From contig NIVC01000032.1 in NCBI GenBank assembly GCA_002269645.1, positions 682,001 to 746,000 on the forward strand: a DNA stretch of 64,000 bases. Direction: 5' to 3'. The notes beneath the pieces are model-generated. The model did no database searches, had not been told where the DNA came from, and saw only the letters and a program-made list of their open reading frames with translations. Position 1 is the stretch's first letter, and each line of letters starts with the position of its first letter. Below are positions 45,601 to 64,000 of this stretch, piece after piece. Origin of the DNA: Macrostomum lignano (taxonomy: Eukaryota). The position numbers and the translations under genes are program-made.

Positions 45601-48600
45601 AATGCTGGCACCCATTTTACAGCTGGGTGAACTGAAGCAATGGTGAGTTAAATGTCTTGCTCAAGGACACAAATTGTTCCTAGTGGGTCGAGAATCGAAC
45701 ACCCGACCTTCAAGTCGTGAGACCGACGCTCTAACCACTAAGCTGCAACCCCCCTGGATTAATAATTATAATGATGAGTTAGTAATGAGGCAGTAACCAA
45801 TGGTCGCTTCATTAAATGAAATAATCATTCAGTAGAATCTGAAAAACATTAAAAGTAATTTATCTTTAGAATAAAGCTGATTATAAAAAAGTATATTTAG
45901 ATATATATTCTCTAAAATCACCACCAGTTTCATTAAGATATCTGTTACTATATACTATATTATATACTATATACTATATACTATATACTATATACTATAG
46001 TATACGCTTGGATACTATAGTATGGTTGAATAATGGTTTTGCTAGTAGATTATCAGACAAACAGTAGCAAAATGCTTAACGAATGCTTTACATACAGTTT
46101 ATCGGTTTGTCAATGGTTAACAGCCACGCATGTTTACTATTAGGTTAATCACTGGAACAGTAACGTTTGTTAAACTTCGGCCATGCCAACACAATGTATC
46201 AATCATCGTTGGCTACATGTAACACTTATTTGCACAGGGTCGCCATCACAAACCCGAAATACATGTACATGTATCAAAAACCGAAATATCACAAACCCGA
46301 AATATCCCAAACCCGAAACATAACATACCCGAAGTATCCCAAACCCCAAATATCACAAACCCTAAATATCCCAAACCCGAAATATAACATACCCGAAATA
46401 TCACAAAACCTAAATATCCCAAACCCGAAATATAACATACCCGAAATATCACAAACCGAAATATCACAAACCCGAAATATCCCAAACCTGAAATATAACA
46501 AACCCGAAATATCACGAACCCGAAATATCACAAACCCTAAATATAACAAACCCTAAATAAAATAAACCCTAAATATAACAACCGCTAAATATCCCAAACC
46601 CGAAATATAACATACCCGAAATATCCCAAACCCGAAATATCCCAAACCCGAAATATCACAAACCCTAAATATTATTAATCCAAAGTTCTAGCAATGTTCA
46701 ACGCTATTTTGGCTTTTGGAGTTATAATATTTCGGGTTTATGATATTTCGGGTTTGGGATATTTCGGGTTTATAATGAAAAGCGCTTTTAGGAGCTGTGA
46801 TTTTCAGGGTTTGTGCTGCCCCCTTCCATTGCAGATTAATAAGCAATGAAATACTCACCTTACCAGCCGATTTGATGCCGCGAATCAGGCATATGACAAC
46901 CACAATCCATGCTAGCAGCAGACAGACCACCAACTCCCATTTCGGTAGCCCCATATTGTGGAAACCGTTCGATATGGACAGAACAAAGTTGCTGAAATAA
47001 GAGTTTTAATATAGATGGAGTTTGTGCAGTTTATGAGAATCAGAATGATCACGAAGGACAGAGCTTCAGGCCCTGTTAACGGTCTTATCAGCACTCAACT
47101 GACACATTTATCACTTTTCTGAATTTTAGAATTCATGATATGATTTAGGTTGATCCATAAGTTTCTCGGCTTAAAATGCAAGAAATGGTTATCAGAAATG
47201 GGCAATACGCTAAAATACCGTCTTGCTTGCCAAGGGTCATCGACAGAATTTCTGAAAGCAGCTGCTTTTTTAATCAACCTTGCACAAAGAAACTTTTTGC
47301 TTAATTAAGCAATTAGCAAATTTTGACTGACGATAAGAACTCTGATCGATTTAGTGCCAATAAAACTTAATAACTTGTTCCACGTGCATCTCGTTAATGC
47401 ATTTTGCAACAAAGACAACCCACCCTGAGAAGTCATGGCATGTACAGCTAAGCTGTTGCGGAATTTACGGGATACTCACTGAAAGTACTCGTCGCTGGAG
47501 GTCTTGGGCGCGGGCACGGAGCCCAGAAAGTTGTGCAGCAGGCTGATATTCGTGGAGTTCAACGTCGCGGCTTCGTCGTAGAATGTCGACAAGGCGGTAC
47601 CGTCGGGCGTGTCGTTTCCAGGAAACGGCCTCATGGCCCCATCCGAAGACTCCATCACCCAGCTGGCGTTGTTGGGCAGCAGGCAGCTGTGGTTCAGAGC
47701 GAAGGCGAAGAACCCGCCCTGACGCCTGCACCGATTTCTCTCCGACAAGGTGCGAATGTGCACGCAGTCGCCGGTGTTCCAGCTGGAGCTGCAGGTGGTC
47801 CAGGGCAGGTCGCCAGTCACTGAGCTGATGCTCTGCCAGAAGTAGAACATCGTCCAAGCGATCAGCATGTTGTAGTAGATGCTGCCGCAAAATGTGATGA
47901 TAATCATCGACCAACCGATGCCTGTTTTGTAAAAATGAGGGAAATTGTTGGGAGTGCGTTACTGTTGTTTATACAGTTCGGTTGAATTACATAAAATTAG
48001 TAGATTGTGCTTTCTTAATGTTAAATGTAGTTAGGAACTTTATTAAATATCCAGGGCGATCACAATGAGTCCTGAGAGGTTGCACGAGAGTGGGGAGTGA
48101 GATGTCCATGAGAATCACCAGGTGATTGGAGAGATGTCCACGAGAATCACCAGGCGATTGGAGAGATGTCCACGAGAATCAGCAGGTGATTGTGAGAGAT
48201 GTCCACGGGAATCTGTGATAAAATACTATCGGTCATGAATATTTTTAATGCAAAAGTTAATTTAATGTAAAATGTTTAAGGTAAAGCACCAACAATAATT
48301 TTGTTTTGGCCGCGAGTAAAAGAACCAAAAGAAAGAGTTGGAGCCTGAGTCCGGCTTGTTATCAAGTAGGATGAGGCGTGGAGGTGAGTATACCTCGTAC
48401 TAGGGTTGGCGAAAAAAAACTGCTATCACATACGAGCTACCTGCTCAAACATATTTGCGCGGGTAATAGAAAACCCAGCAGAGTTAAAGCATTCAAGCTT
48501 AACAATAAATGCTTCATTTTTGGCTCTCGCGTTCAAGAGACACACCCCCAAAAACACTTAGGCACATTAGCTATGCATATAGAAGCTGTACCTCTGGGTG

Positions 48601-62146: not shown

Positions 62147-64000
62147 GTTTGCTTGCGAGCTGCCAGAAAATTACAGCTGCTTTTTTAAACGACTGGAGCA
62201 GCTTTGTATCTGAAATCTACAATGCTCGAAAAGTTTCTAGAAAGTCGGCTTAAACGCACAATCAGTTATTTCAGTATCAACACATGCACAGAGCCAGACT
62301 GTAAAACTAAGTCGCATCGCGGAGTCGAAAAGCCATTCAGAATCTTAAATTTTTGTATTTGCTATCGTGAGAAATGAATGATATACTTTGAAGCATAATA
62401 AAAATGTAAATATTACAAATTTTAGCAAGCGGCTGTTTATTTTATCCGTGCCGAAGCTTAGAATGGATTTTACTATACATTTTGTTATACATGTTCCTTC
62501 GCACGGTAAAACATTTTAGTTAAAATTTTAATCCGTTGACAATATGCTTTGCAATTCCAAATGGTTATTTGTAAAATGGTTTAGTTTTTTATTATTTTTA
62601 AAACGGGATAAACTTATGAACTAAGTCGTAATGAAGATATACATAAATATTCCAATAATGATTGTTTTCCCCGCTTCCTTATACGACATTAACAACAAGC
62701 CGTGTGCCATAAGTATTTGTTATTTTCTTTATTTGATTAAAATAAGTATTGAAAACGTTTAGACACAAAATATAGCGCACAAAAATTCATTCCTGACAAT
62801 GAGAGGTCTGTCAAAATGTGGGCTTTCTATATATTTGCACAGACACGTATATTTTTGTTTTACACACACTGTGTCACTATATGTATAATTGAGAAACACA
62901 GCTGTCAGCTGAATAATATTTGATAAAATACAACAGTTTTTATTAACTACTTGATGCTGAAAGCAGAATAAAATAGAGCGAATGTTTAGCAGAAAAAAAC
63001 TTTTTTGAAAAAAAGAAATATTTTTGAGAGACAGTACATCAAAACTACAACTGTTGCACGAACGATTCAGTGGATTTAATGTAATTAAAAAGGGACACGA
63101 TGACCGTATTTAACACTGCTTAATTAAGGCGTATTTGACGAATCTGCAAAAAGTATATGTTTGATGGGATACTAATTTCCCACACGATAAAAAATAAAAG
63201 AATTCCAGCTGACGGCAAGCATGCTGAATTAAATTTGCAAAACAAATAACAGAAACCAAATGTGTCAAAGCTGAAAAAGCAACAAAAACCAAGGGTTGTT
63301 CATTTTGTTAAAATGATCATTTTTTCTGGGTTTTTTTCATTTTTTCTCTGATGAGCATTCTGTTTGTTACTTGACGTCCCAAAGGATCTTGTTGAAATCT
63401 CGGCTGTTCTAATTAAAATGAATGAATATAGAGTAAAAATTGTGATGCGCTGTCTCGATCGAACTGAACTGCTTCTACGCGTTTTCCCAAACGAAACTGC
63501 GAAAGGAGCAACAGCAGCATGCAGCAGCTTTGAGTAACGCTGAGCACACGCCGAGATGAACCTAATGATCGAGAGGACGAGGGAACGCTCTGTTGGGTCC
63601 CGTCGATCTCTCGTCAAAGTCCCAACCGGTTCGGATCCCCTAAGCGTTGACGCCACCGCCTCGAAGGATTCGCAAGAAACGCGAATCGGTAGACGCGCCA
63701 ATGTTAGCCCCGTTGTTGCTGACGCCGGAGACACTCTGGAGCACAGAGCTCGTCAGCGGTTGCTGCAACAGGTTTGTTAAAAAGATCATTTATCCGGTCC
63801 CGTAAGAATACACACGCTTGCTACGAGTGTTAGTCGTCAATTTGAGCAGTGCCTAAAAATAGTCAAGGACTACTCAAGTACAAGGACGGGAAACCACGTT
63901 TCTTGGAGGAACATTTTAGGAGGCAGGCATTTTTTTACCGAAAAAAAATCATTATGGAGATAGGAGGTTTTTATTTTTGCAGCACAAAAATCGTTATGGC
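58378..64000. repeat. Near-identical segmental duplication, copy 2 (open at the right edge)
   Basis: Collinear with 47444-53575. Confidence 0.95.
63640..63762 (-). CDS. Terminal coding exon of a third SLC6 paralog (copy C); the rest lies beyond the window
   Basis: 123-nt exon after a TTGCAG acceptor, encoding [40 protein letters not shown], the same peptide as the last exon of B. Confidence 0.8.
   Translation of the reverse strand, partial: QPLTSSVLQSVSGVSNNGANIGASTDSRFLRILRGGGVNA

Follow-up and report, generated by a model that had tools for sequence, protein, structure and literature searches.

Three tandem SLC6 genes and the mosaic structure of gene B

The stretch of DNA analysed here (the window, 64,000 bp; NIVC01000032.1:682001-746000, assembly Mlig_3_7) comes from the flatworm Macrostomum lignano. 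Its contig carries three tandem SLC6/SNF transporter genes on the minus strand, in the order C - B - A (Table 1), and the middle gene, B, is by nucleotide identity a mosaic of its two neighbours. Most of C lies beyond the window, and two further pieces of the contig (L003 and L004) carry the sequence past base 64000, to extended coordinate 82597. L004 is 100% identical to positions 43233-64000 of the window over 20,768 bp, and L003 is likewise 100% identical in its overlap. Extended window coordinates (beyond 64000) are marked w. Gene models were built using public proteins as guides, with a search for GT/AG junctions that reproduce each junction peptide.

These splice-exact models give 12 coding exons in each gene, the number counted in a first-pass annotation of the window. 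A and B have uninterrupted reading frames and GT-AG introns, and the frame of C is intact too. The translations of B and C reproduce PAA93181.1 (P0124) and PAA93182.1 (P0121) exactly. Gene A, though intact, is apparently unannotated on NIVC01000032.1, for which the GenBank-derived gene list has only C and B; for the A-like protein P0002 the annotation is limited to a partial gene, on a different contig. Exon 9 of B has two usable acceptors 21 bp apart (55679 and 55658), which add or omit TFGMISG after 'VAKDG'. Both are used by public models (P0001 and P0125 against P0124), and in exon 9 of A the junction search turned up the downstream acceptor alone. A conserved 86-bp element 3′ of each gene (36627-36712, 53233-53320, 63640-63727) was considered as a tRNA or short interspersed nuclear element, but ARAGORN found no tRNA in it and the public proteins place it in the last coding exon.

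Self-BLAST of the window gives matches at 98.9% (47443-48288 with 58377-59221), at 92.8% (49004-50606 with 59635-61237, where the difference is the copy number of two minisatellites) and at 97.2% (50044-53575 with 60452-64000). Below 47443/58377, a break 37 bp 3′ of the exon 4 donor (47480/58414), there are exon-sized matches only, at 77-90%, and the introns of A and B among exons 5-12 are unalignable. From exon 1 to exon 12, the nucleotide identity of A and B is 100, 100, 100, 99.5, 75.9, 81.1, 77.5, 89.6, 87.6, 80.6, 57.7 and 65.9%, and that of B and C is 66.7, 70.2, 83.1, 99.8, 100, 100, 100, 99.2, 99.2, 100, 100 and 100%. A and C are 99.3% identical in exon 4 and 58-88% identical in each other exon. 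In the last exon, B (53355-53233) is 100% identical to C (63762-63640) and 65.9% identical to A. Over its C-like part (59123-53233) B aligns with C w 69633-63640 at 96.9-97.7%, introns included, and C upstream of w 69633 gives no alignment to A or B. As aligned, this pattern of identity is far beyond chance, and B resembles A from its upstream spacer into exon 4, and C from there up to its 3′ end.

Much of this had been described in the first-pass annotation: the near-identity of A and B in exons 1-4 (99.5-100%), their introns and the upstream spacer (47443-53575 with 58377-64000), the substitutions in exons 5-12 (58-90% per exon), the C-like last exon and the break in similarity beside the 3′ end of exon 4. 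Its prediction that exons 5-12 of C and their introns would be nearly identical to those of B was borne out by the contig past 64000 (exons 99.2-100%, introns 97-97.7%). It had also expected exons 1-4 of C to be diverged from A, which holds for exons 1-3 (67-83%) but not for exon 4. C does not match B along its full length, since its exons 1-3 are only 67-83% identical to those of A and B.

Over 747 bp (59123-58377) B is both A-like and C-like. This stretch is the tract tau, in which a 32-bp minisatellite is joined to exon 4 and to 37 bp of the next intron. Tau, that is exon 4 plus some 300 bp around it, is 98-99% identical among A, B and C in a three-way alignment, and the copies in A and C are 97.9% identical over 749 bp by BLAST. 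Around it the locus falls into two copies of a duplicated unit which are colinear end to end, with their sole junction inside tau, the outcome expected of an exchange between two repeats.

Table 1. Coordinates of the SLC6 genes, the duplicated units, the tract tau and other features. Positions are those of the window unless a contig is named; w, extended window coordinates.
Feature	Coordinates	Strand	Details
Gene A, putative downstream parental SLC6	36613..51744	-	725 aa, intact; Pfam SNF E=3.9e-182
Gene A exons	51744-51697, 51074-50919, 49573-49432, 47921-47480, 46991-46859, 39603-39445, 39209-39130, 39033-38909, 38842-38592, 37576-37196, 37118-36993, 36747-36613	-	
Gene B, probable hybrid SLC6	53233..62146	-	721 aa, intact; Pfam SNF E=7e-183
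Gene B exons	62146-62099, 61479-61324, 60197-60056, 58855-58414, 58163-58031, 56274-56116, 56038-55959, 55849-55725, 55658-55408, 54884-54504, 54219-54094, 53355-53233	-	
Gene C, putative upstream parental SLC6	w 72597-63640 (last exon 63762-63640 in the window, rest w 64001-72597)	-	722 aa, intact
Duplicated unit, lower copy (A exons 4-1, 1.49-kb spacer, B exons 12-5)	47443..58376	-	Colinear MAFFT alignment
Duplicated unit, upper copy (B exons 4-1, spacer, 3′ end of C)	58377..64000, continuing to w 68884	-	
Tau copy in A	47443..48190	-	Three-way alignment
Tau copy in B, most likely holding the A-to-C exchange	58377..59123	-	Alignment and site analysis
Interval most likely holding the exchange point, inside B exon 4	58452..58728	-	Polarised informative sites
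Tau copies, L005	13542-14197 and 24564-25218		
Tau copies, L006	13654-14309 and 25191-25848		
BTB/BACK gene, nested in A intron 5 (7.2 kb, 46858-39604)	40328-44807	-	Pfam BTB E=4.8e-16, BACK E=1.8e-12
MBOAT-family acyltransferase exons	1-5954	-	Pfam MBOAT E=2.4e-12, 2e-8
Minisatellite between MBOAT exons	1671-4312		2.6 kb, 23-bp period
Transposase remnant	10744-11229	+	DDE_3 E=3.5e-7
Transposase remnants, mariner-type by eye	14152-14463, 16030-16353	-	No Pfam match
Open frame, 316 codons	22094-23041	+	Non-repetitive; no Pfam match
Degenerate minisatellite fields	23253-31050, 32228-33485		Period ~23 bp, 75-85% self-identity

Copies of the locus without gene B

Two other contigs of the same assembly, L005 (NIVC01002127.1) and L006 (NIVC01004226.1), hold the upstream region, C′, one spacer and A′, and then A-specific sequence; gene B is not present in either. 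A further contig, L001 (NIVC01000839.1), overlaps L006, has a tau identical to that of L006 and stops a little upstream of tau, at 469 bp from its core. L001 was considered as the window locus itself and rejected, as at 88-96% identity it is another copy of the locus. Line DV1 is reported to have three subgenomes, each with negligible heterozygosity, and 3-copy blocks make up ~70% of Mlig_3_7 (PMC10733133). These three subgenomes are probably what the window, L005 and L006 (with L001) represent, and judging from the contigs gene content differs among the three assembled copies of the locus.

There are three copies of tau in the window contig and two each in L005 and L006. Those of L005 are 11,022 bp apart and 94% identical over 1.2 kb. 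Between C′ and A′ of L005 and L006, tau is 94-97% identical, and in its 656-bp core the two copies differ at 16-26 sites. This similarity in the unduplicated copies suggests that tau predates the event that produced B, and would make it a natural substrate for misaligned pairing. The lengths of the duplicated units (10,934 and 10,508 bp) match the distance from tau to tau in L005. In A′ of L005 the 5′ part of tau carries C′-type states which are absent from A″ of L006, a difference that points to independent gene conversion in tau in different copies of the locus. From these site patterns tau appears to mark a local conversion hotspot beside the 32-bp minisatellite.

Divergence of the duplicated units

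Aligned with MAFFT, the two units show 181 mismatches in 10,393 aligned bp. Outside tandem arrays they differ at 112 of 8,449 sites (1.3%), and they also differ in the copy number of four minisatellites. In strict gap-free columns the divergence is 0.60% between A and B, and 0.13%, 0.83% and 1.92% in three segments between B and C. The units are 3.1-6.5% diverged from L005 and L006, except in the exon-5 segment (1.8-2.5%). The duplicates are mutual closest relatives in three of the four segments, and on average they are about one sixth as diverged as the three locus copies are from one another. This low divergence argues for a recent event confined to the window copy of the locus; by this measure it postdates the split of the three assembled copies and took place in one of them only.

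Differences between the units are also 7-fold rarer in exons (5/2,166) than in non-coding sequence (96/6,086; Fisher p=3.5e-8). This would fit purifying selection on both members of each exon pair, although little weight can be put on it because Mlig_3_7 was polished by Pilon with RNA-seq reads (PMC5730564), which could homogenise the exons of near-identical paralogs.

The probable exchange point in exon 4

Sites in tau were polarised with L005, L006 and L001 as outgroups, separating old differences from private mutations. B matches A and not C at the unpolarised sites 59123-59072, and has the A-lineage state at the polarised site 58728; at 58452, 58406, 58403 and 58391 it has the state of the C of the window. 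Sites 58903 and 58480 are private to A and thus uninformative. The exchange most likely lies inside exon 4, between 58728 and 58452, which agrees with the unequal crossover in or near exon 4 put forward in the first-pass annotation. Two other positions were rejected. A crossover at 58377, the edge of A-B identity, conflicts with the fact that C shares the tract to the same edge and with the polarised sites, which put the switch further 5′. A crossover at 59050-59072, read from the raw A/B/C site patterns, did not survive polarisation, after which 58903 and 58480 are private to A and B is still A-type at 58728. On the polarised sites the break at 47443/58377 is the edge of tau, not the exchange point.

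One mosaic is common to all three tau copies of the window contig: their states are of the A lineage at 59000-58920 and 58638, and of the C lineage at 58623-58384. They change from a-type to c-type between 58638 and 58623. The simplest reading is that this shared mosaic would be the exchange itself, later copied by conversion to the 3′ part of tau in A and to its 5′ part in C. Conversion would have run into A and C from the long flanking identity until homology ended, and A-B identity would for this reason stop exactly at 58377 and B-C identity at 59123. This step is not secure because sites 58728, 58452, 58406 and 58403 are patchy.

Origin of gene B

We consider it probable that non-allelic homologous recombination (unequal crossover) between two older tandem paralogs, with C upstream of A, gave B as its duplication product. 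By then A and C would already have been diverged, with exons 58-90% identical and introns unalignable, and would nevertheless have shared tau, 0.75-1.2 kb long and kept similar by gene conversion. Mispairing of the tau of A with the tau of C, followed by an exchange inside exon 4, would have duplicated the 10.5-kb segment between the tracts and given the array C - B - A. In B, the promoter, spacer and exons 1-3 would derive from A, as would the start of exon 4, with the remainder of exon 4 and exons 5-12 coming from C. Several hallmarks of a hybrid formed by unequal crossover are found here, as both parents flank B in tandem and in one orientation, there is a single switch in tau, the homology is older than the event, the unit equals the distance between the repeats, and the unduplicated arrangement exists.

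A number of observations weigh against this origin. The duplicated unit is a 4-copy block, and many 4-copy blocks of Mlig_3_7 are at 3-fold read depth only (PMC10733133). The array is supported by a fused model (P0125) of the ML2 assembly, which reads C+B+A in this order and shows the A-specific (T to I) and B-specific states again. Although its assembler was not that of Mlig_3_7, ML2 comes from the same PacBio data (PMC5730564), and the agreement is one between assemblers and not between data sets; the tandem arrangement itself is known from assemblies only. The annotation is genome-guided, so the transcript model of B is no independent sign of a hybrid mRNA, and independent transcript sources (including Logan assemblies) were not found among the members of the protein cluster. 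Divergence between the units is uneven, with 0% over 1 kb at 53917-54917 against 4.5% at 57331-57828; the latter stretch, in the intron between exons 5 and 6, has 22 mismatches in 493 bp between B and C (w 67839-68336). In the exon-5 segment C is as near to L005 (1.8%) as to B (1.9%). Such unevenness is unexpected from a single clean event and points to later conversions or a mosaic consensus. The low divergence of the exons could in part come from the Pilon polishing.

Two ML2-derived models, P0125 (2591 aa) and P0001 (896 aa), are fused and run C, B and A together with the nested BTB gene, or C″ together with A″, as single proteins. The joining splice leaves one gene shortly ahead of its stop codon and enters the following gene at exon 2; the models reflect either read-through or co-transcription of closely spaced genes (1.49-kb spacers) or an annotation artefact.

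An assembly artefact is an unlikely alternative. The true locus would be C-A, and the assembler would have gone twice round the cycle tau - C 3′ part - spacer - A 5′ part - tau, with the second pass on reads of a related haplovariant or of another subgenome copy, giving a false unit and a false hybrid. Mlig_3_7 is known to be redundant (~764 Mb against a measured genome of 500-700 Mb; PMC10733133, PMC5730564), and the 3-fold depth common among 4-copy blocks is in keeping with this. However, the three locus copies are already on separate contigs, and with negligible heterozygosity within subgenomes no spare haplotype is expected. The divergence of the units (0.6-1.3%) resembles that of L005 and L006 (0-0.74%) and lies below the genome-wide single-nucleotide polymorphism rates between subgenomes (1.4-2.4%; PMC10733133), yet each unit is 3-6.5% from L005 and L006 over most of its length, which indicates that neither was copied from those contigs, and the units differ from each other at the 112 substitution sites and in the four minisatellite copy numbers noted above. 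That L001 ends so close to the tau core suggests that assemblers struggle here; even so, a false join would be needed in a 750-bp repeat despite 130x long-read coverage, and the same C-B-A order came from two assemblers. The haplotype misjoin named as an alternative in the first-pass annotation is weakened by this shared order and by the separate assembly of the three copies.

Less probable still is an old three-gene array, in which B would be an ancient paralog with its 5′ half overwritten from A and its 3′ half from C by long conversions, and C-A elsewhere would result from tau-mediated deletion: the repeated, independent conversion of tau in every copy of the locus shows that conversion is active here, a deletion between two tau copies would restore C-A without a scar, and divergence along the units is uneven, but two conversion tracts of >5 kb would have to abut in tau and replace all of B, including spacers and unalignable introns, in sequence without flanking homology, an extra loss would be required in the L005/L006 lineage, no remnant of a B-specific sequence layer was seen in B, and one exchange explains both the colinearity and the low divergence.

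Consequences for the transporter

By profile match, A, B and C are full-length members of the SLC6 (sodium:neurotransmitter symporter) family. They score 607, 610 and 607 bits against Pfam SNF (PF00209), for which the cut-off is 27, and match the profile up to position 522-523 of 524. The conserved, unwound 12-residue motif of transmembrane segment (TM) 1 is present in all three, and a 23-residue TM1 stretch, identical in A, B and C, aligns to GlyT2. The best matches among solved structures are GlyT2 (E=5.5e-156), GlyT1 and PROT. The closest database proteins are SLC6 proteins of M. lignano (86-93% identity, from a rough translation of the second gene), and the next named relatives are 'glycine transporter 1/2-like' and 'proline transporter-like' proteins at 42-47%. 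The window proteins resemble the GlyT1/GlyT2/PROT branch (SLC6A9, SLC6A5, SLC6A7) in their top structures and relatives and in their full-length SNF domain. They differ from it in being only ~45% identical and in having an insertion of ~85 residues in extracellular loop 2 (EL2), which is encoded by exon 4.

Exons 1-4 cover the N-terminal tail and TM1-3, together with most of the long EL2. The first-pass annotation described B as an intact hybrid with TM1-4 and the large loop from A and TM5-12 from C; B is intact, with A-type sequence 5′ and C-type sequence 3′, but TM4 lies in exon 5 and is C-type. B and C differ at 29 positions, 24 of which are in the cytoplasmic N-terminal tail. The others are I51L in TM1, L80I, I81C and L84V in TM2, and the private L455F, and the four TM1 and TM2 replacements are conservative. 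Of the 90 positions at which B and A differ, all except one fall in exons 5-12. The idea that B mixes substrate-site residues was not upheld, as the substrate/ion-site motif of TM1 is identical in all three proteins and most B-C differences are in the N-terminal tail; judged by these residues, substrate-site mixing in B is negligible. In its predicted protein B is a C-type transporter body with the N-terminus of A, under an A-type upstream region. Because the protein is almost C-type while the upstream region is A-type, the novelty of B is likely to lie in regulation or trafficking, through the swap of promoter and N-terminus, and not in a mixed binding site.

Other features of the window

The BTB/BACK gene nested in intron 5 of A has the same orientation as A. 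The equivalent intron of B and C is only 1.7 kb long and lacks this gene, which is also found in A′ of L005 and L006 and so appears to be old. The MBOAT-family exons run off the start of the window. The very large degenerate minisatellite fields take up roughly 9 kb between the SLC6 cluster and the next genes, and the 316-codon open frame is 93.6% conserved in L001.

Known parallels and significance

Anti-Lepore haemoglobins (beta-delta hybrids, e.g. Hb Miyada and Hb P-Nilotic) arose as duplication products when the delta-beta globin cluster underwent unequal crossover. There, as proposed here, the paralogs are diverged, tandem and in one orientation, the exchange falls in a homologous stretch, and both parents are kept, with the hybrid between them joining the 5′ part of the downstream gene to the 3′ part of the upstream gene. 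The present case differs in that it concerns a flatworm SLC6 transporter cluster, in that the homologous stretch is a 750-bp tract, locally homogenised, of genes that do not align elsewhere, and not a gene-wide similarity, and in that it is found in one of three assembled locus copies of a neopolyploid.

The CYP11B1/CYP11B2 chimera of glucocorticoid-remediable aldosteronism is also a duplication product of unequal crossover, and its main effect is altered regulation. That chimera places the coding body of one paralog behind the regulatory region and first exons of the other, an arrangement similar to that of B, whereas the regulatory effect suggested for B is read from its sequence alone. The red and green opsin genes (OPN1LW/OPN1MW) are ~98% identical throughout, and form hybrid genes and evolve in concert. 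The likeness lies in repeated unequal recombination and conversion between tandem paralogs and in mosaics on the scale of exons; here, in contrast, the similarity is limited to the tract around exon 4.

In this light B would be a clean but ordinary case of a well-known mechanism. The A/B/C case is a new example, and the B and C proteins are already in GenBank as hypothetical proteins. It leaves knowledge of SLC6 transport and of recombination mechanisms unchanged. There is also a practical warning, as exon 4 is identical in A, B and C, and B is the same as A or C elsewhere; because of this shared sequence, probes for RNA interference or in situ work, CRISPR guides and expression estimates from short reads will cross-react among the three genes.

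What the case would add is that a short homogenised exon tract lets otherwise unalignable paralogs recombine into a new intact gene, with the unduplicated state kept in the same genome. It is possible, though we put this forward tentatively, that the exon 4 tract and the 32-bp minisatellite form a standing recombination hotspot, homogenised by conversion in all three copies of the locus and repeatedly reshuffling the 5′ and 3′ halves of these genes, which in one copy made a functional new gene, a transporter of C type regulated in the manner of A. If true, this would be gene birth by recombination, specific to one genome copy, in the early evolution of a neopolyploid animal.

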